Positions 34,662 through 64,000 of a DNA stretch of 64,000 nucleotides are shown here, piece after piece. The DNA lies in the IMG/VR virus record IMGVR_UViG_3300047499_000113, positions 62,001 through 126,000 of that record. One strand, 5' to 3'. A program made the position numbers and the translations under genes. Under the pieces are notes generated by a model, which did no database searches, had not been told where the DNA came from, and saw only the letters and a program-made list of their open reading frames with translations. How positions within the stretch are numbered: position 1 is the stretch's first letter; each line of letters starts with the position of its first letter.

Positions 34662-34694
34662 GGGTCTGCGTCTCCGTATCCAGGACAATACAGC

Positions 34695-42608: not shown

Positions 42609-42627
42609 CTGCCACCTGTCTGCAACG

Positions 42628-44184: not shown

Positions 44185-44221
44185 CCCGAAAAAGCCTGAT
44201 TAGAACTCTGTATAGTCCTCC

Positions 44222-44923: not shown

Positions 44924-45062
44924 TCGGATTACCGCATTCCTCACAGCATCCTTCGAGACCGTCGTCGTCTTCGTCGTCTTGAGACACGATCTCGACCAGA
45001 ACCGGATTGCATCGATCCGCTGACGGTCCGTCGATCGGTCGCAGGCATACTGTCTTGTTCAT
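44904..45062 (-). CDS. Small Cys-rich acidic protein (52 aa, below the ORF-track cutoff)
   Basis: ATGA-coupled to the GT stop: MNKTVCLRPIDGPSADRCNPVLVEIVSQDDEDDDGLEGCCEECGNPITRGPR. Confidence 0.45.
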   Translation of the reverse strand: MNKTVCLRPIDGPSADRCNPVLVEIVSQDDEDDDGLEGCCEECGNPITRGPR

Positions 45063-46192
45063 TGGCTAGCCTTCTTGGCTTTGACGTCCTGAATGATGCG
45101 CTCGAGTTCGACGCAGAGAACTCGATAGTCGTACTTCTTGGCGCGTTCACGGCCAAGATCCCACCACTTCTTGTGCTCTTGCTCGTCCTTCAAGAGCTTG
45201 ATGACCAAGTCGGCCCACTCGTGACCGTGATGGCTCGCCGGCGCATTGACCATCGGGCATGCACCCTCATAGATTTCTGGAAGCGCATCCGCTCGAGAGA
45301 TGACCGGCACTGCGCCTGAAGCGCAGCCCTCGATGATGGCTACTCCATACCCTTCCGTGTATTGGAAGGGATCGCACGGATAGGCCAGAACCATTGCCTC
45401 GCTGTACTCGAGCGCGAGCTGGTCCCGGGAAATGGATCCGATGTGAATGACACCCGGCAAGTCGAGCCTGTCGCGCACGAACATTGCTCGACGACCGTGC
45501 TCACGCAGATTGGCCTGAGGCGCACTAATCAGCCCGGGGATGCTCTCGAACCAATGGGCCATCGAGTGATAAAACACTCGAAGCTCGGCATGGGGAACAG
45601 CCTCGCGAATGCGTGGCCACTGGTCAAGGACCAGGTGGAGTCCGCGATCGGGCGACGATGTGTAAATGCAACGACCCGGCACCTTCGGAGCCATATCGTA
45701 GACGGTGGGGTCGCACCCGTTGTACATGGTGTACCACGGGATGTGGGCCGGCGGGCCCATCGTCTTCAATCGCTCACCGAGCGACGTCGAAGCCGGGCCG
45801 AACGCATCCACCCAAGCATACTCGTGCCCTTTGACATACGAAAAGTCGTTGAACTGCATGTCACAGATTCGTACGACTTTCGGGCTGACAATACCGAGCG
45901 CCGCGGGCTCGTTCCAAGTCAACGCAGCATCCCAGGTCTCGTCGATGCATCCGCGCTCAGGATATGGGCGGACTTTGACCTGGCCCCACATCATCGTTTG
46001 GGGATTTTCCGCACAGAAGACAGTCACGTCATGGCCTCGAGCAGCCATGAATTTCGCGTACGACAGGAACGAGCCATCCGTGCCCGTCAGGCCGCGGGGG
46101 TCCTGATTGATACGCGTGAAGTCGAAGGGCCGAGGACCCTGAGGCGACGTTGTGCCTGCGCTGATGGGGCCGAAAAGGAACCCGAGTTTCAT
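45059..46192 (-). CDS. GT-B (GT4-like) glycosyltransferase
   Basis: MYNGCD, YTSSPDRGL, EX7E motif EGYGVAIIE, SGAVPV. Confidence 0.9.
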   Translation of the reverse strand: MKLGFLFGPISAGTTSPQGPRPFDFTRINQDPRGLTGTDGSFLSYAKFMAARGHDVTVFCAENPQTMMWGQVKVRPYPERGCIDETWDAALTWNEPAALGIVSPKVVRICDMQFNDFSYVKGHEYAWVDAFGPASTSLGERLKTMGPPAHIPWYTMYNGCDPTVYDMAPKVPGRCIYTSSPDRGLHLVLDQWPRIREAVPHAELRVFYHSMAHWFESIPGLISAPQANLREHGRRAMFVRDRLDLPGVIHIGSISRDQLALEYSEAMVLAYPCDPFQYTEGYGVAIIEGCASGAVPVISRADALPEIYEGACPMVNAPASHHGHEWADLVIKLLKDEQEHKKWWDLGRERAKKYDYRVLCVELERIIQDVKAKKASQ

Positions 46193-48459
46193 GTGAGCCC
46201 CATGAGCAAGCGGACCTGCTTCGAGATCTCTGCCCAGTTGTGGGTCTTGCCCATCTCTCGCCCCCTGGCCTGAGCCACTTTGTAGACTTCGTTATCAGTC
46301 AAGAACCTGAGCAGGTTGTCGAAGTAGTGGTCCTTATTCTTCGCGTACGGTGCCGGAGTCGTCGGCACGAAGTTCCCGTAGATCTCGCCCAGCGCATCCG
46401 AACCACAGATTACCGGGAGGCATCCGGACACGGCGCCTTCGAGAGTTGTGCAAGAGAACCCTTCGGTAAACCGCACCGGGTCGCATGTGTAAGCGAGGAT
46501 TCGTGATTCGGACAGAACCTTCACCATTTGGCAGCGAGACACGCTCTTGTGATGGAAGAGCCCACGGCCCTGGAGCTGGCTGACCGCCATGTTGATGTAT
46601 TTGTACCTGTTGGCCAGTTCCTTCTCACCCAGCTGTTCGTAGATCTGAACGGCGTTGTCCTGGATGTGATAATAGACGTGGCATTCCACGTCGGGGACAC
46701 GCTTCTTCAGGCGCGGGAAAAGTTCCAGGAGCCAGTGAAGACCACGATCAGGACTTGAGGCATACACCAGCTTGTGGTTATTCCTCGGGAACTCGTAGTA
46801 AACTGATGGGTCGCATCCATTGGGTAGAATCCGCCAGTCCTTGAACTGGCTGAACTGCGACAGATGCTTCTGGTGCGCGTGCGACAGGGCGGTCACGATG
46901 TCCGTATACTGCTCCCATCCATGGCAGTATCCGAAATCGTTGACTTGCTGATTGAAAATACGCAGCGGCCCCTTATTCATATGTTGGAAGCCACCGGGGT
47001 GAATGGTCGCGAAGGCCGCGTACCAATCCTGTTTCGCTTCCTGCTGCCAGCGGTCCCACCTGGCGAACTGAATGCCATGAGCCGAGAAGTTCTGGCTGAA
47101 GTTCGAGTACATGGTCACATCGTGACCCTGTCTCCCCATTTCAATGGCCTGCATCAAGTTCGTGATCTCGGAACCTGTCAGTCCCCGAGGGTCTGTGAAC
47201 AGGACTTCTGGATTGATTGGTCGAACCGCCGCCCACGGGTCGAGCAAGAAAGCGATCTTCTTGCGTGACGATGACGTGGGAGCTGGCTTTGGGTCCGGTG
47301 CATCGCTCGGCTGGTAGCCAGGGACATCATTCGAGGGCTGGGGCGGGGGCTCGGGCGGTGGCGTAGTCGTGACAATCGGGACGAATCCGGTGTTCTGGCA
47401 GATGATGTCGCTCAGGACCTTTCCGGCTTTTTCGTACGTATATTGCTTGGCCAGTTCTCGGCCGAGCGCCGAGTAATGCTTGGACACATCACTGTCTTGC
47501 AGGACTTTCACTACCGCATCGGTAAACGGAGCCAGGCTCTTCTCAGCCGGACCGGGGACCATGTAGACATGGTCCTTGTAGATGGATTCCAGTGCATCCT
47601 GCGGGGTCAGGACGACGGGAATACCGATCTTGCAGCATTCCATGATGCTGACGGAAAATGTCTCGCACGGGGAAACGACCGAGCAGGGAAAGGCGAATAC
47701 ACTGGCTGCCGACAGCTCCTTCAGAACCTCGGTGCGAGGAAGGTTGGCCATCAGGGTGACGCCACCAGCCTTCTGAGCAAGTTCCAGGTTCTGCTTGAGA
47801 GCGCGGACTCGCCTGCTGATCTCGGAGTTCTCGATGCCGCGACGGTCCACGTGTGCGTAGAGCTTATCGAGGTCGCTGATCACGTGGAGAGTGGCGTGCG
47901 GGACTCGAGCCTTGATTTCTGGCCACATCTGCGCAAGAAGATGCAGGCCGCGCCCTGCTGACGTGTGATAGACGACGCGCCCAGAGACTGGGTTCCAATC
48001 CGGGACAGCCTCTACCGCGTTCGGAAGGACACGCCAATCCGCCCATGGAGCCCAGAATGCCTTCAGAGTCTCCAATGCTGCCTGGCTCGGCGCGGTATTG
48101 ACATCCGTGTGTTCGAATGCAGCCAGACCCTCAATGAGGTAGCTGTGGTGAGATGCAATCCGGAGACAGCCCCACCTGCCGCGAAGAGGCCGGGCGTCAT
48201 ACTGCGCCCACATGACGTTCGGGTGCCCATGCTTGTCTAGTTGATCAAGCGGAAAGTATTGGACGTTGTTGATCGAAGCGGGTGTCCGAAAGAGCGAAAA
48301 CGCCCGAACCTGGTGCCCGTACTTCGGCAGCTCTTTGACCAAATTGAGGAACGCAGCGCGACACCCACCACCCACGCTGTCAGACAGCGGGTTCAGCACG
48401 TCCATCGTGTATCCGCTGGCAGCGTCGGGTGACAGAATTGCGTGAACGATGGAGCCCAT
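46189..48459 (-). CDS. Tandem double GT-B (GT4-like) glycosyltransferase
   Basis: TGATG-coupled ATG 48459; two domains with SAGRGL/ETFSVSIME and SSPDRGL/EGFSCTTLE, joined by a Pro-rich linker. Confidence 0.9.
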   Translation of the reverse strand: MGSIVHAILSPDAASGYTMDVLNPLSDSVGGGCRAAFLNLVKELPKYGHQVRAFSLFRTPASINNVQYFPLDQLDKHGHPNVMWAQYDARPLRGRWGCLRIASHHSYLIEGLAAFEHTDVNTAPSQAALETLKAFWAPWADWRVLPNAVEAVPDWNPVSGRVVYHTSAGRGLHLLAQMWPEIKARVPHATLHVISDLDKLYAHVDRRGIENSEISRRVRALKQNLELAQKAGGVTLMANLPRTEVLKELSAASVFAFPCSVVSPCETFSVSIMECCKIGIPVVLTPQDALESIYKDHVYMVPGPAEKSLAPFTDAVVKVLQDSDVSKHYSALGRELAKQYTYEKAGKVLSDIICQNTGFVPIVTTTPPPEPPPQPSNDVPGYQPSDAPDPKPAPTSSSRKKIAFLLDPWAAVRPINPEVLFTDPRGLTGSEITNLMQAIEMGRQGHDVTMYSNFSQNFSAHGIQFARWDRWQQEAKQDWYAAFATIHPGGFQHMNKGPLRIFNQQVNDFGYCHGWEQYTDIVTALSHAHQKHLSQFSQFKDWRILPNGCDPSVYYEFPRNNHKLVYASSPDRGLHWLLELFPRLKKRVPDVECHVYYHIQDNAVQIYEQLGEKELANRYKYINMAVSQLQGRGLFHHKSVSRCQMVKVLSESRILAYTCDPVRFTEGFSCTTLEGAVSGCLPVICGSDALGEIYGNFVPTTPAPYAKNKDHYFDNLLRFLTDNEVYKVAQARGREMGKTHNWAEISKQVRLLMGLT

Positions 48460-49427
48460 CAGATTCCCCTCTTGAGATACCAGGCAATCGTCTTGGCGAT
48501 GCCCTGATCGTACGGCACTTTCGGTTCCCAGCCCAAGAATTTCTTGGCGAGCGCGATGTCCGGGCAACGCTGCTTCGGATCATCCGTGGGCAATGGCTTC
48601 ATGACGATGTCGCCCTCTCCGCCGAAAGCGGAGATGACATCCATGGCCACACTCTTGATGGTACGCTCGTCGGGGTTGCCGATGTTGACCACCGGGATGC
48701 GCTGATGGAGTGTGTCCACATCGACGTTCTTGATGGCTCGGAAGTTGACCTCCATGAGCTTCACGAGTGCATCGACGGTATCCGAGACGTAGCAGAAGCT
48801 CCTGGTCTGGCTTCCGTCGCCGTAGACCGTCAGCGGCTCTTTCTGCATGGCCTGCAGGATGAAGTTCGGAATGAGCCGGCCGTCACGGAAAGCCATCCGT
48901 GGACCGTAGGTGTTGAAGAGTCGCGCGATGCGAACGTCGGTGCCGTACTGGTTGGCCCAGGCGACCGCGAGACTCTCGCCGATGCGCTTGCCCTCGTCAT
49001 AGCAGGCACGCGGCCCGAGCGGATTGACGTGACCCCAGTAGCTCTCCTTCTGCGGATGCACCTCGGGGTCGCCGTAGACTTCGGAAGTCGACGTGATGAG
49101 GAGACGTGCCCGGGTGTTGCGCGCGCACTCGAGCGCGTTGCGCGTGCCCATCATCGCAGTCTCGATGGTCCGCACCGGGTTGCGTTGGTAGTGCACCGGG
49201 CTCGCAGGGCAGGCCAGATGGTAAATCTGGTCACACTCGATGTGCCACGGGTCGCAGACGTCGTGCCGGTAGAACTCGAAGTCCCGATGGTCGAACAGGT
49301 GAGCGATGTTCTCCCGGTGAGAGGTGAACATATTGTCGATGCAGACGACCTCGTGTTTCTGCGCGAGCAGAAATTCGCAGAGGTGACTTCCGATGAAACC
49401 CGCGCCTCCTGTGACAATTATGCGCAT
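48459..49427 (-). CDS. uxs: UDP-glucuronate decarboxylase (UDP-xylose synthase)
   Basis: TGGAGFIGSHL, YHLACPASPVHYQRNP, TSTSEVYGDP, YDEGKR, RLFNTYGPRM, GSQTRSFCYVSD, DDPKQRCPDI. Confidence 0.93.
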   Translation of the reverse strand: MRIIVTGGAGFIGSHLCEFLLAQKHEVVCIDNMFTSHRENIAHLFDHRDFEFYRHDVCDPWHIECDQIYHLACPASPVHYQRNPVRTIETAMMGTRNALECARNTRARLLITSTSEVYGDPEVHPQKESYWGHVNPLGPRACYDEGKRIGESLAVAWANQYGTDVRIARLFNTYGPRMAFRDGRLIPNFILQAMQKEPLTVYGDGSQTRSFCYVSDTVDALVKLMEVNFRAIKNVDVDTLHQRIPVVNIGNPDERTIKSVAMDVISAFGGEGDIVMKPLPTDDPKQRCPDIALAKKFLGWEPKVPYDQGIAKTIAWYLKRGI

Positions 49428-49912
49428 ATGAACTTCTCCAGATACCTAATAGCGGCTTTGAGAAGCTGGATGTTATCCAGAAAGCGCGCAAGTCCATTAT
49501 TGCATCTATCGCAGAGGAGACCTCGAATGATCTGAGTCAGATGATCATGATCCACGCTTAGACGCTTGAATTTCGTGCACTTTCGTTCGCAGATTGCACA
49601 TACACCATTCTGAGCTGCGAGCATCTGCTCATATTCTTCAACAGTGAGATTTCGACGCTGAAGGCTCCGAACTAACGGATAGTTAGGATGCTTCTCCTTC
49701 CAACGGAGATCTGCTTGTTTTTTATCCTCTGGGTCTCGAGCTGCTCTCCTAGCCTTCACTCTCTCAGGATGTCGTTTCTGATAATTCTCGACATTCACAC
49801 GTTGTTTGTCGAGATGGAACCCGCACTTCCAGGGAGTGAGACCTTTGGCTTTGCGATCGCGACAATCTTCGCATGGAGCATTTGTTGGTCTTGTAATTTC
49901 GAAAACGCTCAT
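49418..49912 (-). CDS. Endonuclease VII-family homing endonuclease
   Basis: ATGA-coupled ATG 49912; QNGVCAICE...LSVDHDH...IRGLLCDRCNNGL; low GC. Confidence 0.9.
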   Translation of the reverse strand: MSVFEITRPTNAPCEDCRDRKAKGLTPWKCGFHLDKQRVNVENYQKRHPERVKARRAARDPEDKKQADLRWKEKHPNYPLVRSLQRRNLTVEEYEQMLAAQNGVCAICERKCTKFKRLSVDHDHLTQIIRGLLCDRCNNGLARFLDNIQLLKAAIRYLEKFICA

Positions 49913-52347
49913 TGTGCAGCCGCCTGGTATTCGGGGAGTTCCAGATCTGAGTCCACGCCTTGGAGAAGCATTTCTTCCCAATCTTTGGCGAGGTCATCCC
50001 AGCCAAAGTGCTCGGTGGCGTAAAGCTGTAGCTCGAGCCTATCCGCGTCGCCATCCTTCAGCAGAGCCGCCACAGTCGCATCGAGGAACCGGTTTTGGAA
50101 GTCAGCGTTCTTCCAATCGCCATGGACCATGGTGCCGCGATCGCCGACCGTCTCGTTGAGTGCGGCGAGTGGAGTAGTCACCATGCGGAGACCGGCGGCC
50201 TGCGCCTCCATGGCTGTGATGCACGAGGTTTCGGAGAACCAAGTCGGGTAGGCCCAGACTCCGCTCTTGAGCATCTCGCGCGCAAGCTCTTCTTGCGACA
50301 CGCGACCGTGGTAGAAAACGCCCTGATTCTTGAATTTTTCGATTGAATTCTTTAGGCTGATGATGGTCAGGCGCTGCGCATTATCGGCGCAGGCTTCCCA
50401 AGTCTGGAAACCGTAGTAGATGTGCAGCTCAGCGTCGGGCACACGCTCACGCAGTCGCGGCCAGATGTCGAAGAGCGCGTCGAGCCCGCGATCTGGACTC
50501 GAGGAATAGACGATTCGATGCGGACTGCGCTCGTGCTTCTGATCGAAGCGCGACAAATCGATGCCGTTTCTCGTCTTCTGCACCTTCTGCGGAGGCAGCC
50601 AGTTGTACCTCGACAACAGATTCTGGCGGTGCCAGTCAGAGAGCGCGAGGATACGGTCGATCTTGCCAGCGCGCTCTTGGTTCAGAGAGTCGCCGCAGTG
50701 GATGTCGTGCACCCAAAGAACTGAGTGCTTCCATCTGACGTTGTGGTGGGCGTCGACAGCCTCAGGGCGCCGCGACGTGATGAGTACGTCGCACGACAGG
50801 TCCTTGTACTTGTTGACGTCGAGATACTGCACTCCGTCGAACGTGTACTCGAGCGTTTTGTTGCTATTGCGCGGGCTGCAGTCGCCGAAGACGCGCACGC
50901 GGTGGCCTCGCGCCGCAAGGCGACGACCCATTTCGATGACGGCGGTCTCGGATCCTCCGATGCCATTGAGCTTGGCCGTTTCCGGGTTCCAAGCCTCGAC
51001 GCCGCGGCCGACATAGAAGACGATGTCGAGCTTTCCGTCCGGTGCTTGCGATTGTTCGACAGGCTTCGGGCCCTGAGGCGCCGGGATCTTGTTCTCCCGC
51101 TGCGTGGCTTCGAGAAAGTCGCGGACTTCCTTCGTAATCTTGCCGAGTTCGACAAGTCGATTGAGCTTCTGCTTGTATTCCTCGACCGCGTCGTACTCTT
51201 CGAAGACGCGCTTGTTGAGATTGAGCTGCTCGTCGTTCGGAAAGACTTGGAGAGCCTTCTTGATGCTCTCGACTGCACCCTTCGTGTCGCCTATCTTGCT
51301 CAGCGCCAGGTTGTAATACCTGTGGATCTCGAAGTTGCGCTCGAGCGGGTTCACGAAGAGAGTCGTTGCAGTCGGAGGCTTGTCCAGGCCCATGCGCGCG
51401 TAATGCACGCACCGCTGCCACCAGCGATGAGCGTTGTTGCCTCGCTGGGCCATGAAGTAGCAACCCTTGGCGACGGTGAAGTAGCCTTCACCCCAGTCCT
51501 CGCGAATGAGGATAGCCTTGAATCCCCACTCAATCGCTTTCTCGTATTCGGCTCGGTTCATGTAGTGGTTGGCGACGAGCTGCGCTGCCTGCCAGCGCTC
51601 GTCGTCCCAACCGGACTTGTCCATGTACAGAGCCAGCCACTTGATGGCCTCGTCGATGAGGCCGTTGTTGCCGCACTCCATCCCGAGGTAGTAGAGGTGC
51701 CGAGCGTCCTTGTCTCCACAAACCTCGTACTGCTTGCGGAGAATGCGCAGATTCCGGCCCGGCTCCATCTTCTTGTGGGCCGCGTTCCGGTGGTGGACGA
51801 TCTTCACCCGGTTGGTGTGCTGGCGGACGTCTGCGCCGAGCGGGCAAAGGACTTCGTGCACCCACCCGCGCCACTCGAAATGCTGCCGCGGGGTCACGAG
51901 CCTCTCGCGCTCGTGGACCATGTTCACGTTTCCCGCGTGGTCCCGGCTGTACTCGTACGGCATCATGACCAGCGACGGCTGGCCGTTGCGCGCCCGGTCA
52001 TATTCCTCGACGAGACTCCCTAGATTCTCGGCGCCGACCACCTCGTCGTCGCCGTCTATCCACATCACCCAAGGCTGCTTGGCGTGGCTGAAAGCACGGT
52101 TCCGGGCCTGATCGAAACGTAGAATCAGACCATTCGGATTCTCGGGCGTCCTCGTTGCCGGGGCATTGCACTCCGTATACGTCTCGACAAAATCCGCGTA
52201 CTTGCGCGCGATTTCGACCGAGTTGTCTTCGGAGCCCGTGTCGACGACGATCAGCTCGGCGACGTGCGGGCGGATTGACTTGAGGCAGTTCTCGAGTTGG
52301 CCGTGCTCATCGCGAACGATGAGGCACACGGAGATGGGAGCCACCAT
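49909..52347 (-). CDS. GT2 (GT-A) + TPR + GT-B multidomain glycosyltransferase
   Basis: ISVCLIVRDE, VVDTGSEDNS, ARNRAF, WIDGDD, WRGWVHE (SunS/SgtA-like GT2); helical TPR-like repeats; C-terminal GIGGSE, SSSPDRGL, ETSCITAME. Start taken as ATG 52347. Confidence 0.92.
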   Translation of the reverse strand: MVAPISVCLIVRDEHGQLENCLKSIRPHVAELIVVDTGSEDNSVEIARKYADFVETYTECNAPATRTPENPNGLILRFDQARNRAFSHAKQPWVMWIDGDDEVVGAENLGSLVEEYDRARNGQPSLVMMPYEYSRDHAGNVNMVHERERLVTPRQHFEWRGWVHEVLCPLGADVRQHTNRVKIVHHRNAAHKKMEPGRNLRILRKQYEVCGDKDARHLYYLGMECGNNGLIDEAIKWLALYMDKSGWDDERWQAAQLVANHYMNRAEYEKAIEWGFKAILIREDWGEGYFTVAKGCYFMAQRGNNAHRWWQRCVHYARMGLDKPPTATTLFVNPLERNFEIHRYYNLALSKIGDTKGAVESIKKALQVFPNDEQLNLNKRVFEEYDAVEEYKQKLNRLVELGKITKEVRDFLEATQRENKIPAPQGPKPVEQSQAPDGKLDIVFYVGRGVEAWNPETAKLNGIGGSETAVIEMGRRLAARGHRVRVFGDCSPRNSNKTLEYTFDGVQYLDVNKYKDLSCDVLITSRRPEAVDAHHNVRWKHSVLWVHDIHCGDSLNQERAGKIDRILALSDWHRQNLLSRYNWLPPQKVQKTRNGIDLSRFDQKHERSPHRIVYSSSPDRGLDALFDIWPRLRERVPDAELHIYYGFQTWEACADNAQRLTIISLKNSIEKFKNQGVFYHGRVSQEELAREMLKSGVWAYPTWFSETSCITAMEAQAAGLRMVTTPLAALNETVGDRGTMVHGDWKNADFQNRFLDATVAALLKDGDADRLELQLYATEHFGWDDLAKDWEEMLLQGVDSDLELPEYQAAAQ

Positions 52348-52410
52348 GCGGTCTTGGTCTCTGTATGCGTGTGGACCGGCGAACCTGCCGGTCAATCACA
52401 CGTTACCGAG

Positions 52411-53722: not shown

Positions 53723-54481
53723 CTAGAATTGGACATATTCGAACGTCGCGTAGGCTGTTGATACCGTTGCCGCGCCAGGCTTCTCGTTGACGAAGATGAA
53801 GTCAGGGCCAAGCACCGGGATCGCCGTCCCGAAGGGCACAAGCACTTCGCCAGGACCCCCGTGCGGGAAAAAGCCGCCCATATTGAGCTGCGGGAGATTG
53901 GTCGCGAGTGGATTTTGCTGGTGCATCAAATTAGTCGCACCTCCAGCCGCCGTCGCTCCGGCGTAGATGTCGAGGATGTAACAGGTCACACCTGTTGGCA
54001 CATAGTGCTGTGCCCAGAATGTCTGGTTGTCGGTCGCCGCAATAGATCCCCAAGCGCCTCCGGTACCGCCCGTGTTAACATCGATGCTAATAGTGCCGAC
54101 GTTGCCACCAGTCGTCCCCGTCATTGTGACCAACATGGCCTCGATGAACGCGATGGTGGTGCTCACGGTATTCACGGCCGTCGTGCCATTCATCGTCACG
54201 ACTTCTTGATTGAGCGTAAAGGTTGTATCGAGGTAGCTGACCGTGACCTGTTGGGCTCCCGTCCCCGCCGAGGCATCGTTCACACTCGAAGAGACAAGGC
54301 TGCGTTGGGCGTTGGCCCCCTGAGGCGCGTATACCGTGGCGCGAACGACCTTCCCACCCGTACCGGACGTGCCGACGTAACCAACGGCAACACCTCGAGT
54401 CGCACTCGGGGGCAGTCCGCCAATCCTGGCAAGATCGAGAGTTGTGAGCGCTTGCGTGCCGTCGAGTAGTCCAAGACCCAT
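53723..54481 (-). CDS. Fibre/appendage-like beta-rich virion protein
   Basis: SSSVNDASAGTGAQQVTV...VTMNGTTAVNT...DNQTF..HYVPTGVTCYI; paralogue of the C-terminal half of 54484..55920. Confidence 0.6.
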   Translation of the reverse strand: MGLGLLDGTQALTTLDLARIGGLPPSATRGVAVGYVGTSGTGGKVVRATVYAPQGANAQRSLVSSSVNDASAGTGAQQVTVSYLDTTFTLNQEVVTMNGTTAVNTVSTTIAFIEAMLVTMTGTTGGNVGTISIDVNTGGTGGAWGSIAATDNQTFWAQHYVPTGVTCYILDIYAGATAAGGATNLMHQQNPLATNLPQLNMGGFFPHGGPGEVLVPFGTAIPVLGPDFIFVNEKPGAATVSTAYATFEYVQF

Positions 54482-54483
54482 GT

Positions 54484-55920
54484 TTAGAACTCCACCCAGT
54501 CGAAAGATGCATCAATTAGATTTCCCGAAGTGCTCGCCCTGTAGAACCGAATGCGCGCCGGACCCGCAATGACAGAAGTTGGTTCTGTCGAGCGAGCATA
54601 TCCTCCATAGCGAGCCCCTGGGCCAACATGAAGCGTGGTCTCGGCGGGTCCGGTTGCGATTGGATTGATGACGCGAAGGAGTGTCGTGAATGAACTCTCA
54701 ACTCCCGTGTTATCCCACTGAATGCCGACGATGTAGCAGGTCTTTCCGGTCTGAACGTAATGCATCCCCAAGAACGTCTGATTGTCACCACCTGCGATGA
54801 TCGAGCCAGTGCCGATAGTCGTGATCGTCCCGCCGCCACCCGCGTTGTTCACGTAGAGCGTGATGACCCCTGCGTTCACCCCACCGCTACCAGCCCTCGT
54901 CACTATAAGGCTCTCGATGAATCGGTAGCTGTTCACCGTTGCCACTGCTGTCGTGCCGTTCATGGACACAACTTCAGTGAGTCGGTTCATGTTTCCGTCG
55001 AATCCGACTACCGTGACTTGCTGAGCGCCCGTGCCCGCTGAGGCATCACTCGCACTCGCCGATTTGAGGGATCGAATTGCAGCGGAAGTCTGCTCTGTAT
55101 ATGCAGTCGCAGACAATTGTCCCGCAGAACCCGAAGAATTGAAACCAACCGTGTGGCCGACGTATGCACCAGAAATCCTTGCGACTGCCGCCGCGTAGGC
55201 AAAATTTCCAGTTAGAGCGAGACCATTAACGTCGGTAATAATAGAGCGCAGAGTGTTGGAAGCGTCGATACCTCCAACCATGGCGGCTGTAGGTGGCATG
55301 GCGCCAGTAACGCCAATTGGACCATCGAACAGAGTGGATGGATCTCTAACTTGGCTCGCCCGCATCGCACAGTTCGCCGAGCCTGAAGTGAACGCAGAAA
55401 CTCTGACGCGAGCGTGCGATGCGCCACCTGCACCGACGATCGTTTTACCTGTAGTTCCATTCGCCGAAGAGAATACGATAGTCGAAGCTTTGGAACCTGT
55501 CGCCGGATCGTCAAAAAATGACGTGTTCCAAGTAGTTCCACCATCAAAGGAGATTTCGGGAACGATCGTGCCGATGAGTGTACCTGAAAGAAGCTGGAAT
55601 CCAACGCTCTGCGATCCCGCGAGTGCCACCTGAACCGCTGCATTCAACGCATTCAGAAGCCCAGAGCCTGTTGTATCAGGAATTTGAGTGGAAAGAACTC
55701 CACCTGTGGGGCCGCCAGCGGCACCAAGTCCGACCACGGTCGCATTGAGGTTCGCTGCGGTCGGCTGCGTGACTTGAATGGGTCCCGTCACGCCAACTGG
55801 CATCATGCCGTTTTGGCCCTGCACAGTCATCACCCCGCCCGTGGGCGAGGGGAATCCGGGGGTCCCCTGGCTCGTATCGACGAAGATCGGGGCGGGAGCA
55901 GCTACTATCACCGCGGGCAC
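54484..55920 (-). CDS. Fibre/appendage-like beta-rich virion protein
   Basis: Gly/Ala/Thr-rich; SASASDASAGTGAQQVTV...VSMNGTTAVAT...DNQTF..HYVQTGKTCYI. Confidence 0.62.
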   Translation of the reverse strand: MPAVIVAAPAPIFVDTSQGTPGFPSPTGGVMTVQGQNGMMPVGVTGPIQVTQPTAANLNATVVGLGAAGGPTGGVLSTQIPDTTGSGLLNALNAAVQVALAGSQSVGFQLLSGTLIGTIVPEISFDGGTTWNTSFFDDPATGSKASTIVFSSANGTTGKTIVGAGGASHARVRVSAFTSGSANCAMRASQVRDPSTLFDGPIGVTGAMPPTAAMVGGIDASNTLRSIITDVNGLALTGNFAYAAAVARISGAYVGHTVGFNSSGSAGQLSATAYTEQTSAAIRSLKSASASDASAGTGAQQVTVVGFDGNMNRLTEVVSMNGTTAVATVNSYRFIESLIVTRAGSGGVNAGVITLYVNNAGGGGTITTIGTGSIIAGGDNQTFLGMHYVQTGKTCYIVGIQWDNTGVESSFTTLLRVINPIATGPAETTLHVGPGARYGGYARSTEPTSVIAGPARIRFYRASTSGNLIDASFDWVEF

Positions 55921-56345
55921 TTTGACTTCTCCAGATACTCGGCGGCCATCCGCAACTGAATGGAACTGTCTTTCATCAGCTCAAGAGCCCTATTGCAATC
56001 TGTGCATAGAAGACCACGGATCACGTTTGTCTTGTGATCGCGGTCCACGGAAAGACGGATGACTTTGCCGTTTATCGTGCGCACTTCCTTCTCGCGACAT
56101 ATGGCACAGACTCCATTCTGTTCAACGAGAATTTGATCATAGTCTTCAGGAGGGATGCCGTAATCGTTCTTGAGGTTTCGTCGACGGACGCTCTCAGAGT
56201 GGAGAGGATCTAACCCATCGCGTTCGCGCCGAGTCGCAACACTTCTTTTTTTGCTGGCGGCATACGCTTCTGGATTCAGTTCACGGCTTTTCTTACTCCG
56301 TTCTATAGATGCTGCCTTCCTTTTCTGGGGGTCTTTGTACGGCAT
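55908..56345 (-). CDS. Endonuclease VII-family protein with His-to-Arg change in the DHDH motif
   Basis: TAATG-coupled; QNGVCAICR...LSVDRDH...IRGLLCTDCNRAL; low GC. Confidence 0.85.
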   Translation of the reverse strand: MPYKDPQKRKAASIERSKKSRELNPEAYAASKKRSVATRRERDGLDPLHSESVRRRNLKNDYGIPPEDYDQILVEQNGVCAICREKEVRTINGKVIRLSVDRDHKTNVIRGLLCTDCNRALELMKDSSIQLRMAAEYLEKSKCPR

Positions 56346-59300
56346 TAGATATTCCTGACTTCGGTGTACGAAATGAGCGTGTTACCTGAGTAGGTATATG
56401 TGATCGTCACTTGTCCAATGACGGTGACGCCATCAGAAGCATAGGTTTTGCGAACTTCCTGCGTGACTCGAGAACCCGAGTAGGTGTAGTCGATGGATTT
56501 GAGGAGGGTGCTCGTAGCGTGATTCGTCCAAGTCTCTCGATAGACCTTGCTCCCAGAGTAAGTCGCTGCGTAATCGTTGGTGACCTCGACGGGATCGTTG
56601 CAAGCGAGCAGGAAGTCATTGTAGCTAGGACCGGTGACTGACGGACCGGTTGCTCCTTGCGGTCCAGTTGCACCGGTGCTTCCAACAGGACCCGTTGCTC
56701 CCTGGGGGCCAGTTTGCCCTTGTGGCCCTGTTGCTCCTTGAGGCCCCGTAGCGCCAGTGCGACCAGCGGCTCCAGTTGGTCCTGTCGCGCCTTGCGGTCC
56801 CGTCGACCCGGTGACACCTGGTGAACCTTGAGCACCTTGCGGACCGGTCGATCCGGTAACACCTGGCGAGCCTTGAGTCCCCTGCGGACCGGTAGCTCCA
56901 GTTGATCCGGCGGGGCCGGTGGCGCCTTGTGGTCCTGTGGCACCCGTCGGTCCAATTTGGCCAGTAGGTCCTTGCGATCCGACCGGTCCCGTAGCACCTT
57001 GAGGACCTGTTGCTCCAGGAGATCCTTGCTGCCCTTGTGGACCTGTAGCGCCTGGAGATCCCTGTGCACCCTGGGGCCCTATCGGTCCTGTCGGCCCAGT
57101 GGCCCCGGTAACTCCGGGAGAACCCTGCAGCCCTTGTGGTCCTGTAGCGCCGGTAACACCAGGTGAACCCTGAGGGCCTTGCGGCCCGGTAGATCCTGTA
57201 CTTCCGACAGGGCCTGTCTGTCCTTGAGGCCCGGTTGCTCCCGTAGCGCCAATTGGTCCGGTCGGACCTTGTGGCCCAGTAGCCCCCGTGATTCCAGGTG
57301 AACCCTGCTGCCCTTGTGGACCTGTAGCGCCAGTGCGACCAGCGGCTCCAGTTGGTCCTGTCGCGCCTTGCGGTCCGGTCGCTCCTGTAGCTCCAATGGG
57401 GCCGGTCGCACCCTGAGGACCAATGGGACCAGTCGATCCTTGAGGACCCGTGGCTCCGGTGCTACCAATAGGACCAGTGGAACCCGTGACTCCGGGGCTC
57501 CCTTGGGATCCTTGAGGTCCGGTGGCGCCGGTAGATCCAATGGGCCCAGTTGCACCTTGTGGTCCTGTAGCGCCGGTAACACCAGGTGAACCCTGAGGAC
57601 CTTGCGGCCCAGTCGACCCAGTGACTCCGGGTGAACCTTGAGGTCCCTGTGGACCTGTAGCGCCGGTGCTCCCGATAGGACCAGTCGCTCCTTGCGGACC
57701 GGTGGGTCCAGTCGCACCGATCTGTCCAGTTGGACCATGCGGACCGGTCGCGCCAGTGCTTCCAATCGGGCCAGTCGACCCAGTTACTCCAGGCGAACCT
57801 TGTGCGCCTTGAGGACCGGTGGCACCAGTTGAACCAACCGGGCCCGTAGCACCCTGCGGTCCGGTGCTTCCCGTTACCCCTGGACTACCCTGCTGACCTT
57901 GCGGACCGGTGGGGCCAGTGGCACCAGTAGAACCGACCGGACCCGTGGCACCCTGCGGTCCAGTGGAACCCGTACTACCGATTTGTCCAGTTGGGCCCTG
58001 GGGTCCTGTAGTTCCGGTTACCCCCGGGGATCCCTGAGGACCAATAGGACCGGTTGGGCCCGTATTTCCTGTGACTCCGGGTGAACCCTGCGGGCCTTGG
58101 GGTCCAGTTGCTCCTGTGGATCCTATGGGGCCAGTTGAACCTTGCGGTCCTGTGGCTCCGGTGCTCCCAATTGGGCCAGTCGATCCTTGTGGTCCAGTTG
58201 CTCCTGTGACTCCCGGCGACCCCTGCGAACCTTGAGGGCCAGTGGCACCCGTGACCCCTGGGCTGCCCTGTTGACCTTGGGGGCCTGTAGCGCCAGTGCT
58301 GCCAATCGGACCAGTTTGTCCCTGAGGACCGGTAGGACCGGTAGGACCCGTAACTCCTGGCGATCCCTGCGAACCTTGCGGGCCCGTTGAACCAGTGACC
58401 CCGGTGACTCCAGGAGATCCTTGCTGACCCTGAGGTCCAATGGCGCCAGTGCTGCCTACAGGACCAGTCGGACCGGTTGCACCCGTCGAACCGATCGGGC
58501 CGGTTTGCCCCTGTGGACCGGTGGCGCCCGTAGACCCTATCGGGCCAGTTGAGCCCTGAGGCCCTGTGGCGCCCTTTACGCCAGGGGACCCTTGGGGGCC
58601 TGTACTTCCGGTTGAGCCTTGCGGTCCAGTCGACCCAGTAACTCCCGGACTTCCTTGTTGTCCTTGAGGTCCGGTTGACCCCGTGACGCCAGGAGAGCCC
58701 TGCTGACCTTGCGGGCCGGTCGCACCGGTAGACCCGATCGGGCCGGTTGGACCTTGGGGACCGGTTGCGCCAGTGCTACCCACAGGACCGGTCGAGCCCT
58801 GAGCACCTGTCGCTCCTGTGACTCCTGGCGATCCTTGTGTTCCCTGAGGTCCGGTAGCACCGGTCGGTCCGACATCGCCAGTCGGTCCCTGAGGTCCTGT
58901 GGAACCTGTGACTCCCGGTGATCCTTGAGGTCCTTGCGGTCCTGTCGATCCGGTTGGGCCCTGTGGACCAGTCGATCCAGTTTGGCCCTGAGGACCTGTG
59001 CTGCCAGTGACACCAGGCGATCCCTGAGCGCCTTGGGGGCCCGTTGGACCCGTGACGCCTGGCGATCCTTGAGTTCCTTGCGGACCAGTTGCACCTGTGG
59101 AACCGATCTGGCCGGTTGGTCCTTGCGGGCCGGTCGACCCCGTAGACCCTATTGGTCCGGTCGCTCCCGTGATGCCTGGTGAGCCTTGAGGTCCTGTGGC
59201 GCCAGTGACCCCGTCAGCACCAGTAGCACCCTGCGGTCCGGTCGCTCCTATAACGCCAGGAGATCCCTGCGGTCCAATAGAACCAGTCGCACCTGTGACA

Positions 59301-61048
59301 CCCGGTGAACCTTGGGAGCCTTGCGGGCCTGTGCTTCCGGTCGGTCCAACATCTCCGGTCGCACCTTGGGGCCCAGTCGCTCCCGTCGATCCAACAGGCC
59401 CGGTCTCTCCCTGTGGGCCAGTTGAACCTGTAGGTCCGATGTTTCCCGTAGGTCCTTGGGGCCCGGTGCTACCGGTGACACCGGGAGATCCCTGGGGGCC
59501 AGTCGCGCCAATCGGACCGGTCTGGCCCTGGGGACCAGTTGCGCCAGTAACACCCGGAGACCCTTGCGGGCCAGTAGACCCCGTAATCCCAGGGCTTCCC
59601 TGCGGGCCAGTGGCACCTGTAACCCCGGGAGATCCCTGACTACCCTGCGGGCCTGTAGCGCCGGTGGCCCCGTCCGGCCCTGTAGCTCCAGTGGAACCAA
59701 TTGGCCCGGTAGAACCCTGAGGGCCAGTGCTGCCGGTAACTCCTGGTGACCCTTGAGTGCCCTGCGGGCCAGTGGCACCTGTAACCCCGGGAGATCCCTG
59801 TTCACCTTGCGGGCCGGTCGCTCCCGTGGCTCCGACGTCACCCGTAGGACCCTGAGGTCCAGTTGCGCCAGTCGATCCTTGCTGTCCAGTCGGCCCTTGG
59901 GGACCTGTAGACCCCGTTACTCCGGGAGAACCTTGATCCCCTTGAGGGCCAGTTGCTCCCGTTGGTCCGATGCTGCCAGTCGATCCCTGGGGGCCAGTTG
60001 CTCCCGTGACTCCTGGGCTGCCCTGATCGCCCTGAGGACCTGTAGAACCGGTCGGTCCAATAGAGCCCGTTGATCCTTGCGGACCCGTGGCTCCAGTTGC
60101 TCCTTGGGGCCCAGTTGCACCGGTAGAACCAACAGGTCCCGTGGACCCGGTGACTCCTGGAGAGCCTTGGCTGCCTTGCGGTCCTGTAGCTCCAGTGGCA
60201 CCATCTACGCCAGTTGCGCCTTGAGGGCCCGTGGTACCTTGAGGACCGGTCGAGCCCGTGACACCAGGGGAACCCTGCTGGCCCTGAGGACCCGTGGACC
60301 CCGTGACACCCGGCGAGCCTTGATCTCCCTGTGGACCGGTTGCCCCTGTAGCACCTTGGGGACCTTGCGGGCCTGTAGCGCCAGTGGAACCGACTTCTCC
60401 AGTCGGCCCTTGCGCTCCGGTTGAGCCAGTTACGCCTGGCGATCCTTGCTGTCCTTGCGGTCCTGTGGCGCCCGTAGCCCCGTCGACACCCGTCGCACCC
60501 TGGGGACCCGTTGCGCCTGTGGAGCCGACTGGTCCGGTTTCTCCTTGCGGGCCAGTAGAACCGGTGACGCCAGGGGTCCCCTGATCACCCTGAGGTCCCG
60601 TCGCGCCTGGAGAACCCTGCTGCCCTTGCGGACCGGTCGGACCAGTAACTCCATCATTGCCTTGAGGCCCGGTCGGACCAGTAACTCCCGGAGAACCCTG
60701 CGGGCCTTGGGGACCGGTCGGTCCAGTCGCGCTGAGAGGCCCTGTAACTCCAGAGGGGCTGAGTGAATAAATCTGACCGGTGTCAGTGATGTAGAGGTCC
60801 CAAGGCAGACCGCTCGGAGTGAGGATTTGGAGAGGCGGAGCTAGTCCGGTCGGCGACAAACCCGTGTACGGCACGAAACCGACATAGCTCATCGCCAGAT
60901 CGAGATCTGGCTTCAGCGAGTCATCGTCGAGATAGATATCGACGTAGATCGTCGCATTCGAGACACCAGTGATCACCGCGCCCGCGTCGATGACATTCTC
61001 GAGCGCAGTCTGATTGATCGGGTTGGACTGGTATCTATAGATGCCCAT
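56345..61048 (-). CDS. Giant Thr-rich collagen-like fibre protein (1567 aa)
   Basis: ~105-aa N-terminal domain, roughly 455 Gly-X-Y triplets ([18 protein letters not shown]) with no interruption that I could see, and a ~95-aa beta-rich C-terminal domain. Confidence 0.92.
56748..57376. repeat. Exact 53-nt direct repeat within the collagen gene
   Basis: GTAGCGCCAGTGCGACCAGCGGCTCCAGTTGGTCCTGTCGCGCCTTGCGGTCC at 56748-56800 and 57324-57376. Confidence 0.8.
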
Positions 61049-64000
61049 TACACGAGCTCAACGGTCACAACGACCTGGCTAACAGCAGGGGAAACGCTGG
61101 CTGTTTTTGTGGCCTGAATCGTCACTTGATCGCCGGCGTTGACGTTGACGGTGTGAAGCGTGTCCTGGCCAGTCGTCACGTTGCCGGCAACAGTCGCGGA
61201 GAGACTCGTGGTTGTGCCATTGACCTCCACCGTGTAAGTGATGGTGTTTGTAGAAGTGCTCGGCGAATTCTGCATCACGTAGAGATGCTGCAGAGTGCCG
61301 CTCCTCGTCACGCGCAAGCGATAGATATCTGAAGTTGCAGCGAGGCTCGAGACGTAGCCTGGATAGAGCCAGCGCGTTGCAGTCGTCGTCGCCATGCTGT
61401 CGGCGGCGAAGACGAGAATGGTGCCCGCGCCCGGACCTCGAGGTCCGGTGGGTCCGGTTACACCCGTGGGACCAGCCGGGCCAGTTGGACCAGTTGCACC
61501 TTGAGGCCCGGTCGGTCCCGTGGCTCCGATCGGTCCCGTGGCTCCTGTAGTGCCGAATGGTCCGGTGGGCCCAGTGAAGCCCGTAACGCCTGGCGATCCT
61601 TGCGGACCGATCGGACCTGTGGGCCCGGTGACACCGGTCACTCCGGGGCTGCCCTGCGGCCCAATCGGTCCAGTTGGACCAGTTGCACCCTGAGGTCCTG
61701 TTGCGCCGGTGACCCCCGGCGATCCTTGCGGACCGACAGGACCAGTCGGACCAGTGAATCCAGTTACTCCCGGGCTGCCATGCGGCCCGATCGGACCGGT
61801 GGGTCCAGTGACACCCGTTGCTCCCTGAGGCCCGGTGGGTCCAGTTGCGCCTTGCGGGCCAGTTGCACCCGTGACACCATTGGCCCCGGTCGGTCCTTGC
61901 GGGCCAGTGAATCCAGTGACGCCCGGCGATCCTTGAGGCCCGGTCGCGCCAGTGGGGCCAATGTCGCCGGTCGGGCCCTGAGGACCCGTAGCCCCCGTGA
62001 CTCCCGGAGAGCCTTGTGGTCCGATCGGACCCGTAGGTCCGGTTGCACCCGTGACCCCAGGAGAGCCTTGCGACCCGACCGGGCCGGTAGCACCTGTTGG
62101 TCCTATGTCACCAGTCGGTCCTTGAGGACCCGTGGCCCCTGTGACGCCAGGTGAGCCCTGCTCACCTTGGGGTCCAGTTGGACCCGTGGCTCCAGTGACT
62201 CCATCAGCACCGGTAGCCCCTTGCGGACCGGTTGCACCCGTCGGCCCGATATCGCCAGTCGGACCTTGAGGACCTGTAGCGCCAGTAACTCCAGGAGATC
62301 CCTGATCGCCTTGCGGACCGGTTGCACCCGTGACGCCGGGAGAACCTTGCGGCCCGATGGGGCCTGTAGCACCGGTGACGCCAGGTGAGCCCTGCGGTCC
62401 TGTGGCGCCGGTTGCTCCGTCAGCTCCCGTTGCTCCTTGCGGCCCAGTTGCCCCGGTAACACCCGGTGAGCCTTGAGGACCTGTTGCTCCTGTAACGCCA
62501 TCTACTCCGGTGGCTCCTTGAGGCCCGGTAGCACCGGTTGGGCCAATTTCTCCAGTTGGACCCTGCGGCCCAGTGGCGCCAGTCACCCCCGGTGAGCCCT
62601 GATCGCCTTGCGGACCTGTCGGTCCAGTGGTGCCTGTCACACCATCGGCGCCAGTGGCTCCTTGTGGTCCGGTAGCGCCCGTGACTCCAGGAGACCCTTG
62701 TTCACCTTGCGGGCCGGTCGCGCCCGTAGCACCGTCCGCTCCGGTCGCTCCTCGAGGACCGGTGGCGCCAGTCACACCATCAAAGCCAGTAGCACCCTGC
62801 GGACCAGTCGCTCCGGTAACTCCCGGGCTGCCCTGATCGCCTTGCGTACCAGTTGCTCCCGTGGGCCCAATGTCTCCCGTGGGCCCTTGCGGTCCAGTCG
62901 CTCCTGTAACGCCCGGCGAACCCTGCGGACCGAAGTCTCCAGTCGGGCCCTGAGGCCCGGTGGCTCCAGTTACACCATCTGCACCGGTCGGGCCCTGCGG
63001 ACCTGTGGCGCCCGTGGGACCGATATCGCCAGTTGGACCTTGTGGGCCGGTGGCTCCAGTGACTCCGGGTGACCCCTGCTCCCCTTGAGGCCCTGTCGCG
63101 CCCGTGACTCCATCAGCGCCCGTAGGACCCTGAGGACCAGTTGCTCCAGTCGGTCCAACATCACCAGTAGGACCCTGGGGACCTGTCGCGCCCGTAACTC
63201 CGGGTGAACCCTGATCACCTTGTGGACCCGTAGCACCCGTGACGCCATCAACTCCGGTAGCCCCTTGAGGTCCGGTGGCGCCGGTAACTCCATCGACACC
63301 TGTCGCGCCCTGAGGGCCTGTCGCCCCGGTAACGCCCGGCGAGCCTTGGTCTCCTTGCGGGCCGGTGGCTCCAGTAACTCCTGGGCTACCTTGATCGCCC
63401 TGCGGGCCCGTGGGACCGGTCGCGCCTGTGACACCGTCATTGCCCTGTGGTCCAGTGGCGCCCGTGGGTCCGATGTCACCAGTAGGCCCTTGAGGTCCTG
63501 TCGCGCCCGTAACTCCAGGAGATCCCTGGTCTCCCTGAGGACCCGTAGCGCCGGTCGCGCCATCAGGTCCAGTTGCACCCGTAAAGCCATCGGCACCAGT
63601 CGGTCCCTGTGGGCCAGTAGCTCCGGTGACTCCATCGGCACCCGTAGCCCCTTGTGGGCCGGTGGCTCCGGTGATACCCGGCGAGCCTTGATCACCTTGA
63701 GGCCCAGTTGGACCGGTGGCACCCGTGGCTCCGTCTGGACCCGTGGCTCCTGTGACTCCTGGAGATCCTTGATCGCCCTGGGGTCCAGTCGCTCCCGTAA
63801 CTCCGGGGGAACCCTGCGGTCCAGTCGCTCCTGTGGGACCAATATCACCAGTTGGTCCTTGGGGTCCTGTGGAGCCAGTAACCCCATCAGCTCCCGTCGC
63901 ACCTTGCGGTCCAGTTGCTCCGGTGACTCCGGGTGAACCTTGATCGCCTTGCGGACCTGTCGGACCGGTTGCCCCATCAGGTCCTGTGGCTCCCGTCACT
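61048..64000 (-). CDS. Second Thr-rich collagen-like fibre protein, 5' end outside the window
   Basis: More than 850 aa of Gly-X-Y, then a ~125-aa beta-sandwich C-terminal domain (C1q/BclA-CTD-like); TAATG-coupled to the next collagen gene. The Met in the ORF track is an edge artefact. Confidence 0.92.

Follow-up and report, generated by a model that had tools for sequence, protein, structure and literature searches.

Two giant collagen-like fibre genes of a huge phage as candidates for glycosylated virion filaments

The described proteins closest in plan to those reported here are (i) BclA of the Bacillus cereus group exosporium nap and F-BclA, which forms the tip fibrillum of F-type endospore appendages, (ii) the collagen-like fibres of known phages, and (iii) the animal collagens with C1q/TNF domains. 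BclA has a short N-terminal domain, a strain-variable collagen-like region that sets filament length, and a trimerising C-terminal domain, and it is glycosylated (PMC10470788). The collagen-like tail-fibre proteins of E. coli prophages (PMC3368898), P5 of PRD1, and the PHROG ‘collagen like minor tail’ families join Gly-X-Y repeats to a trimeric distal domain, and one review calls phage collagens very short (PMC8968730). The subject of this analysis is a pair of adjacent genes, A and B, on a 64,000-nucleotide stretch of DNA (hereafter the window), which comprises bases 62001-126000 of the single 240,015-bp virus record IMGVR_UViG_3300047499_000113, linear by IMG/VR class. They share the plan of the phage proteins but differ in scale: known phage collagens have tens of triplets, whereas genes A and B have 454 and 716, their relatives have up to 1189, and a glycosyltransferase (GT) cluster is linked to the locus.

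It is fairly probable that genes A and B are late structural genes of a huge contractile-tailed phage and encode trimeric, probably Thr-glycosylated adhesion filaments of the virion whose length changes by whole triplets. The locus comprises the following features.

Window 56345..61048, minus strand: gene A, a 1567-amino-acid (aa) collagen-like fibre protein (open reading frame (ORF), triplet count, Pfam Collagen)
Window 60725..61048, minus strand: gene A N-terminal domain, residues 1-108, a putative virion anchor that begins M-x-x-Y-R-Y
Window 56639..60724, minus strand: gene A collagen stalk, residues 109-1470, 454 triplets, ~390 nm fully extended
Window 56345..56638, minus strand: gene A C-terminal tip, 97 aa plus stop, beta-rich, unrelated to the gene B knob
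Window 61048..67935 (genome 123048..129935), minus strand: gene B, 2295 aa when complete, running off the window
Window 61051..61428, minus strand: gene B C-terminal knob, 126 aa, an eight-stranded C1q/TNF/BclA-like jelly roll, predicted homotrimer

The gene A stalk consists of 454 consecutive Gly-X-Y triplets (1362 aa) with zero interruptions, and the protein matches Pfam Collagen (PF01391) at E = 4e-204 (661 bits vs the 27.2 cut-off). The part of gene B inside the window (61048..63999, minus strand) holds the C-terminal 983 codons with 285 triplets (855 aa; Pfam Collagen E = 3e-130, 425 bits vs 27.2). The complete gene B encodes a 13-residue N-terminus with a conserved N-P-R-G motif, a stalk of 716 triplets (2148 aa), and a 126-residue C-terminal domain; the triplets fall into five runs of 24, 72, 17, 66, and 537, parted by four two-residue breaks in the first quarter of the stalk. 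Estimates of ~1365 Gly-X-Y residues for gene A and more than 850 for the truncated upstream gene, made in the original prediction from the window alone, agree with these exact counts. The start of gene A and the stop of gene B overlap by 1 base, and gene B starts 4 nt past the stop of u1 (427 aa), one of ten conserved upstream genes (u1-u10).

Both stalks have 35-38% Pro at X together with 50-53% Thr and 23-28% Gln at Y (35% Pro, 50% Thr, and 28% Gln in gene A), a make-up that fits the Thr-rich class of prokaryotic collagens (reviewed in PMC8968730). The stalks are weakly charged and acidic: charged residues account for 2% of X plus Y in gene A and for 7.5% in the gene B stalk, where nearly all are Asp or Glu, and Lys occurs once in the stalk of A and not at all in that of B. 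Gly at every third position, Pro at X, and Thr or Gln at Y are sequence features of a homotrimeric collagen triple helix, and each protein would be expected to form one.

Repeats are a classic source of misassembly, and the repeat number could in principle stem from repeat expansion or chimeric joining in a short-read metagenome assembly; the contigs of L007, L020, L024, and L025 end within the collagen tract, and a second IMG/VR record, with 20.7 kb of identical sequence, may have come out of the same assembly. The DNA of the tracts argues otherwise. Adjacent 45-nt units are only 65-88% identical (Tandem Repeats Finder), and the longest exact repeat across 11.6 kb is 50-59 bp, with none reaching 60 bp, so that collapse or expansion is unlikely. 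The frame stays open through 1567 and 2295 codons, intact orthologous ORFs occur in at least 10 other metagenome contigs, and in independent samples the intact orthologues measure 1898 to ~3960 aa; two of these sit in complete genomes that have terminal repeats. The start codons of A and B are confirmed by orthologues that begin at the same residues. Relative to the close relative L007, in which the knob is 92% and the N-terminal domain 96% identical, 22 of 22 indels are multiples of three residues. An assembly artefact is highly improbable on this evidence and is largely excluded.

Third-position GC is 0.47-0.49 in A and B vs ~0.75 in other genes, the collagen genes being shifted to Gly, Pro, Thr, and Gln codons that end in A or T; selection against exact DNA repeats or a different tRNA demand are possible reasons. 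Low third-position GC is probably also why the gene caller of the Joint Genome Institute (JGI) splits collagen ORFs. In L007 (1..3245) an intact 590-aa frame is called as four small genes, and in the contigs of P0005 and P0158 collagen ORFs are likewise split into many small genes in several frames. Because gene callers shred them in this way, few giant collagen proteins reach the protein databases, and homology searches that filter on protein length overlook them. Long antisense ORFs on the plus strand (window 61501..63936 and genome 125940..129959; up to 703 aa) are by-products of the Gly-X-Y repeat and were rejected as genes.

The knob of gene B was modelled by AlphaFold2 from a 51-sequence alignment with a predicted local distance difference test score (pLDDT) of 95.7; this model replaced a poor first one (pLDDT 54) built on 4 sequences. 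Foldseek places the F-BclA C-terminal domain (9h38) first, with C1q-like proteins, cerebellins, TNF ligands, and ExsFA among its other top matches (template modelling (TM) scores 0.46-0.58). VIA-align, which is independent of Foldseek, gives Z values of 8.7 for 4-1BBL, 8.6 for the tail-fibre tip of phage 7-7-1, 7.3-7.5 for BclA (7.3 for 1wck), and 6.9 for PRD1 P5; these lie near the level that the aligner flags as common, and it is the consistency across hits, not any single score, that carries the argument. Three copies of the knob are predicted to form a homotrimer with an interaction prediction score from aligned errors (ipSAE) of 0.96 vs 0.00 for the best control, at least 95% of contacts agreeing between runs and partner pLDDT being at least 94; the trimer mark is reached by 20 of 30 proteins solved as one-chain pairs and by 1 of 23 solved as single chains. 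Structure prediction, which the first reading of the window had proposed for the terminal trimerisation domains, thus returns for gene B a C1q/TNF-like knob that is predicted to trimerise.

Gene B follows the same three-part plan as BclA and F-BclA: a short N-terminal peptide (the putative anchor in gene B), a Thr-rich variable stalk, and a C1q/TNF-like trimerising knob of ~130 aa. It differs from them in (i) the absence of sequence kinship, with 9-18% identity in structural alignments, (ii) another N-terminal motif, (iii) its carrier, a phage instead of a spore, and (iv) glycosylation, which BclA has and the gene B stalk may have. The BclA stalk is roughly 10x shorter than that of gene B. The knob has no Pfam match above threshold and no PDB sequence match to BclA, which leaves it outside the BclA C-terminal family by sequence; its likeness to BclA, C1q, and TNF appears to be one of fold only, and gene B is taken to work like BclA without being filed as a member of that family.

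The animal proteins C1q, C1q-like, and the cerebellins, all among the top Foldseek matches, likewise combine a collagen stalk with a trimeric jelly-roll head that nucleates trimers and binds ligands. Collagens VIII and X and adiponectin are further animal collagens with a C1q/TNF domain. The animal proteins resemble gene B at the level of fold only (TM ~0.5-0.58) and differ in their hydroxyproline machinery, none of which was found in the present record; their hydroxylysine sugar chemistry cannot apply, because the stalks have next to no Lys. Among phages, the knob is best matched by the tip of the Agrobacterium phage 7-7-1 tail fibre (PDB 9rkv; Z 8.6, root-mean-square deviation 2.6 Å over 106 residues), which belongs to a phage that binds an extended host appendage. 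With 15% identity and no collagen stalk in the matched chain, this is a fold match that does not establish kinship.

An exhaustive profile search finds the knob to belong to a large family without a name, with 4137 representatives at E <= 1e-3, whose members occur as single domains, as tandem copies, or as the C-terminal part of long phage proteins with matches to tail-fibre PHROGs. Knob homologues also lie in the tail modules of L005 and of Brevundimonas phage Bajun. In the latter (ON529858.1, L006 5857..8499), an 880-aa protein annotated as hypothetical, which lies between the baseplate spike and tail proteins, is made up of six knob-family domains in tandem, and many database members of ~400 aa carry three copies; single-chain pseudo-trimers of the jelly roll may exist.

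The N-terminal domain of gene A aligns with the N-termini of P0023, P0096, and L007. P0023 and P0096 are long proteins with fibre-like repeats and a B-type knob; P0023 matches tail-protein PHROGs and BppL_N. A profile hidden Markov model of the domain picks up two fibre genes of the related genome G001 (E = 1e-14) and one gene of G005, and the domain is 53% identical to the N-terminus of a 1293-aa protein on a 453-kb phage contig. It has no sequence match in Pfam, PHROG, or PDB, and tblastn of this domain and of the tip against phages gave none. A word search with the domain found no full-length relatives, likely because gene callers fragment their genes.

In other contigs, homologues 56-73% identical to the gene A tip either follow collagen stalks or occur on their own; Pfam and PDB searches with the tip gave no match, and no known fold was assigned. 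An Atlas lead to RHS-repeat proteins is weak (score 0.83, under the meaningful level), and comparison found the tip unrelated to that of the third G001 gene. The stalk of gene A gave no tblastn match to phages, as expected from the low-complexity filter, and for that reason the result says nothing on the rarity of long phage collagens.

Relatives of the locus were collected by an IMG/VR search with u1, which returned eleven contigs, two complete genomes among them, and in every one a collagen ORF begins just past u1. The lengths of the gene B orthologues below are those of stop-to-stop frames, except for the present record (G000), which is counted from ATG.

G002: 3965 aa, 1189 triplets, ~1.0 µm
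G003: 2966 aa, 953 triplets
G004: 2430 aa, 774 triplets, all uninterrupted
G000 (this record): 2295 aa, 716 triplets
L024: at least 1811 aa, 597 triplets, cut by the contig end
G005: 1898 aa, 537 triplets, plus an A-like gene of 1111 aa and 307 triplets
G006: 2063 aa, 419 triplets
L026: 855 aa, 223 triplets
G001: 582 aa, 148 triplets, plus two A-type genes of 86 triplets each

The orthologues thus range from 148 to 1189 triplets, or from ~130 nm to ~1 µm. Nearly all open with M-x-x-[D/E/Q/N]-N-P-R-G followed directly by collagen; this peptide of 8-13 residues has variants in G005 and G006. The tips vary. An A-type tip is carried by the N-P-R-G-type protein in G003 (73% identity) and in G004 (59%), and G002, G006, and the third gene of G001 carry yet other tips. 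Conserved N-terminal modules with differing tips, the pattern of receptor-binding fibres, are found across G000-G006. It had been suggested at the outset that the different C-terminal domains point to distinct ligands or anchor points; the spirit of that suggestion is supported by the contrast between the gene B knob and the unrelated 97-aa tip of gene A and by the shuffling of tips. A further 1300-aa paralogue in G001 has 377 triplets.

The order u10 to u1, collagen gene or genes, phrog_8198 gene, and GT cluster is kept in nine relatives, and the more distant 453-kb phage contig shows the same pairing of a collagen fibre, a protein with an A-type N-terminus, and a GT. In L031 the collagen pair lies 3 kb from the major capsid gene. 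The knob family was not found in LR745208.1 or Tunturi_5, two sheath-bearing relatives, so the collagen locus marks a subclade. Genes u1-u10 have no informative PHROG, Pfam, or NCBIfam match, and a u1 profile has no credible PDB match; hhalign of u1 against the knob profile gave a probability of 3%, which does not support a BxpB-like, knob-family jelly roll at the end of u1.

Placement of the locus in a tailed phage depends on two further features of the window.

Window 24830..30649, minus strand: tail sheath, 1939 aa (PHROG 2839 tail sheath, E = 2e-25)
Window 4228..7608, minus strand: putative tail tape measure protein, 1126 aa (synteny, conserved length)

The sheath is 32-40% identical to the sheaths of its nearest kin, the uncultured 485-kb phage LR745208.1 (~40%), Tunturiibacter phage Tunturi_5 (34%), and Bacillus phage G; its match to Pfam Phage_sheath_1C is weak (E = 8e-5, 23.1 bits, under the 26.9-bit cut-off). 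Its presence shows the phage, on genomic grounds, to be contractile-tailed. By homology with Tunturi_5, connector, terminator, and sheath genes lie at genome 86-102 kb and the major capsid and protease genes at genome 156-162 kb, which puts the collagen locus between neck/tail genes and head genes, with one strand used throughout. The record is ~56% complete (CheckV estimate), and complete relatives of its phage measure 393 kb and 436 kb, both with terminal repeats. Tunturi_5, the nearest of its kin in culture, infects Acidobacteriota, a hint at hosts in soil. At 1939 aa the sheath is ~3x the usual size; its ends match the Tunturi_5 and LR745208.1 sheaths, and its middle contains repeated inserted domains with a match to the E1_FCCH domain. 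These insertions suggest a heavily decorated tail surface.

The 1126-aa ORF is probably the tape measure; its sequence is enriched in Ala, Lys, Gly, Met, and Gln. In LR745208.1 the genes run contiguously, in synteny with this genome, from the sheath through a homologue of a 229-aa protein (probably the tube), two genes, and a 1127-aa homologue of the ORF to homologues from the baseplate side. Since length is kept within one residue at only 21% identity, the ORF is a credible length ruler. By the rule of thumb for tape measures, 0.15 nm per residue, it would give a tail of ~170 nm. This figure, already proposed in the original prediction, is made credible by synteny and conserved length but remains an estimate, because the ORF has no tape-measure match in Pfam, PHROG, NCBIfam, or PDB; for the genes around it, PHROG, Pfam, and NCBIfam gave nothing informative either. 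A tail of 167 nm has been measured for Tunturi_5 (PMC11924767), whose ruler gene was not pinpointed in the present analysis.

At 0.286 nm per residue the contour length would be ~390 nm for gene A (1362 aa), as first calculated, and ~614 nm for complete gene B, beside which the earlier figure is conservative; these lengths correspond to 2.3x and 3.6x the estimated tail, and the gene B fibre is likely longer than the whole particle. Contour length is not reach: a triple helix of 400-600 nm is flexible, and gene B has four breaks. If the stalks of virion fibres double back on themselves, supercoil, form bundles, or cover the capsid or tail with a coat of glycoprotein, reach would be far under contour length and the comparison with the tail would mislead. 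Collagen triple helices are semi-flexible, the four register breaks in B could act as hinges, and the few charges (2% in A, 7.5% in B) would provide little electrostatic stiffening. Such an arrangement is nevertheless unlikely, given that 537 and 454 triplets run uninterrupted, that BclA filaments project outward with a length that tracks repeat number (PMC10470788), and that the very different lengths kept by selection in relatives are easier to explain if length matters. Stalk length would then be functionally relevant. The conspicuously hairy virion that had been envisaged is one possibility among others; a virion with only a handful of very long filaments would be equally consistent.

Association of the fibres with the virion is suggested by the kinship of their domains with tail-fibre proteins, by the late structural region, and by synteny. 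A and B could instead be real collagen-like trimers that are made late and released at lysis, or that stay intracellular; they might then clump cells or debris as a matrix or net, serve as a decoy or coat, or act as a scaffold within infected cells. In favour of this, gene B lacks a globular N-terminal anchor, no function is known for the ten upstream genes or for the phrog_8198 genes, and a micron-long fibre would be awkward to assemble on a ~0.3-µm particle. This alternative is distinctly unlikely: the families of the knob and of the gene A N-terminal domain recur in tail modules and in proteins that bear features of tail fibres, the gene B N-terminal peptide is conserved clade-wide as an anchor motif would be, constant N-terminal modules with shuffled tips are the pattern of receptor-binding fibres, the genes lie among structural genes on the same strand, and neither A nor B has a signal peptide.

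If A and B are virion filaments, the N-terminal modules would fix them to the particle, the short N-terminal peptide of gene B docking on a basal trimer, a counterpart of BxpB/ExsFA, by analogy with BclA (PMC10470788). The gene B knob would nucleate and register the helix and form a distal adhesive tip, as in C1q and BclA, and the C-terminal tips would touch host or environmental surfaces. Long flexible filaments of this kind could widen the capture radius of a large, slowly diffusing particle. Stalks lengthen and shorten by whole triplets, and tips pass from one stalk to another. The remaining step, glycosylation, is suggested by the genes downstream of gene A.

Window 55908..56345, minus strand: Endonuclease VII-like gene (Pfam Endonuclease_7, E = 1e-18), directly downstream of gene A with one base in common
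Window 53723..55920, minus strand: two paralogous phrog_8198 genes, d478 and d252 (478 and 252 aa; PHROG matches)
Window 49909..52395, minus strand: 828-aa glycosyltransferase with GT2, TPR, and GT4/GT1 domains (Pfam), the conserved head of the sugar cluster
Window 48459..49427, minus strand: NAD-dependent epimerase/dehydratase (PHROG/Pfam)
Window 46189..48567, minus strand: GT4/GT1, 792 aa (PHROG/Pfam)
Window 45059..46192, minus strand: GT1 (PHROG/Pfam)
Window 42628..44184, minus strand: B12-binding radical SAM enzyme, 518 aa, between the UDP-glucose dehydrogenase and the glycosyltransferases
Window 41142..42608, minus strand: UDP-glucose dehydrogenase (PHROG/Pfam)

Beyond the 828-aa GT, the sugar cluster spans window 41142..49427 (minus strand; PHROG 9148, E = 7e-94, and Pfam). 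Homologues of the 828-aa GT (50-64% identity) lie downstream on the same strand in G001 (adjacent), G004 and G005 (~4.5 kb), and G002 (~11 kb), and further ones occur in L026, L031 (distant), and the contig that carries P0158. The GTs and sugar-nucleotide enzymes could O-glycosylate the abundant Thr at Y, and the Thr glycans would stabilise the helix without hydroxyproline, as in BclA; the radical SAM enzyme may modify a sugar, for example by methylation or epimerisation. A phrog_8198 homologue directly follows the collagen gene or genes in L018, L019, L021, and L026, which makes the products candidates for a fibre partner or assembly factor; they have no PDB match, and PHROG, Pfam, and NCBIfam are uninformative on their function. 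The syntenic loci of relatives have no gene at the position of the Endonuclease VII-like gene, which is probably a mobile homing-type insertion outside the fibre system.

Several observations weigh against glycosylated virion filaments. The GT homologue of G006 lies 18 kb from the fibre locus, gene linkage to the GT cluster is the sole pointer to stalk glycosylation, and no prolyl hydroxylase (PF13640, a 2-oxoglutarate (2OG) oxygenase) was found in the 240-kb record, itself only ~56% complete. The predicted knob trimer may owe its score to solved C1q/TNF trimers that the predictor has memorised. In published micrographs (PMC11924767) Tunturi_5, which lacks the knob family, is an ordinary myovirus. 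Neither the terminal domains nor any of the ten conserved upstream genes has a PHROG or Pfam match or an informative NCBIfam one, so that head, neck, and baseplate are all candidate attachment sites. Pointers to the site diverge, knob kin lying in tail modules and the L031 pair near the capsid gene, while neighbours of the locus are without annotation.

Two further viral systems invite comparison. Mimivirus has collagen-like proteins together with its own glycosylation enzymes for a fibrous surface layer (PMC9546862, PMC8968730). It differs in being a eukaryotic virus with hydroxylysine-linked sugars and a lysyl hydroxylase, whereas the present stalks are practically without Lys and no 2OG oxygenase was found; there is no evidence of homology. 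The ‘hairy’ jumbo phages CBB, phAPEC6, and Atu_ph07 have whisker-like fibres along the tail in electron micrographs (PMC5259590, PMC7247149, PMC6102473). The term ‘collagen-like’ has zero occurrences in those papers, and the searches run show no relationship between the three phages and the present clade. Literature searches turned up no account of giant collagen fibres in huge or jumbo phages.

Collagen-like phage fibres and the BclA/C1q architecture are already known; what is new is the scale, the series of stalk lengths across the clade with its shuffled tips, and the dedicated GT cluster. A wider proposal, offered tentatively and given somewhat less than an even chance, is that a clade of 390-440-kb environmental phages carries virion filaments of single, hydroxyproline-free, Thr-glycosylated triple helices, with contour lengths of 0.13 to ~1 µm or several times that of the whole particle, that serve as long-range host capture lines, with length set by triplet indels, specificity by knob swaps, and stability by the phage's own sugar and GT set. 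Such filaments would, to our knowledge, be among the longest triple helices outside animals. They would also alter our view of host finding by very large, slowly diffusing phages in soil or sediment, as adhesive reach would be several times particle size and adjustable by simple repeat gain or loss. The clade is a natural experiment in which one orthologous stalk exists at 148-1189 triplets with interchangeable heads, useful for studying the folding, register, and stability of hydroxyproline-free collagen and whether Thr glycosylation stabilises it. The encoding of stalk, knob, and glycosyltransferases together is also of interest for recombinant collagen biomaterials.

Collagen-like sequence also occurs elsewhere in the record and in a relative. 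A 541-aa ORF with 73 triplets in four runs (genome 40170..41795, minus strand; L002) lies among giant baseplate-side genes, and a 350-aa ORF with 40 triplets (genome 135124..136176, minus strand; L001:12077-13129) matches tail-fibre PHROGs at E = 4e-42. P0017 likewise matches tail-fibre PHROGs. In Tunturi_5, a protein of 1469 aa carries 110 triplets.

In a megablast search, 24 kb of the window had no match among 50,697 phage genomes, and Aragorn found zero tRNA genes in the 240-kb record. Among the tail genes lies a 514-aa AAA+ ATPase of the FtsH/CDC48/proteasome-activating type (window 13958..15502, minus strand; E = 9e-31, far under family cut-offs). A 344-aa protein (window 33654..34688, minus strand) matches Pfam Volactin, an archaeal actin homologue, at E = 2.6e-73 and has a 52%-identical homologue at the same place in LR745208.1, beside a tail-terminator-like gene; this actin homologue is conserved in huge phages and may act as a cytoskeletal element during infection.

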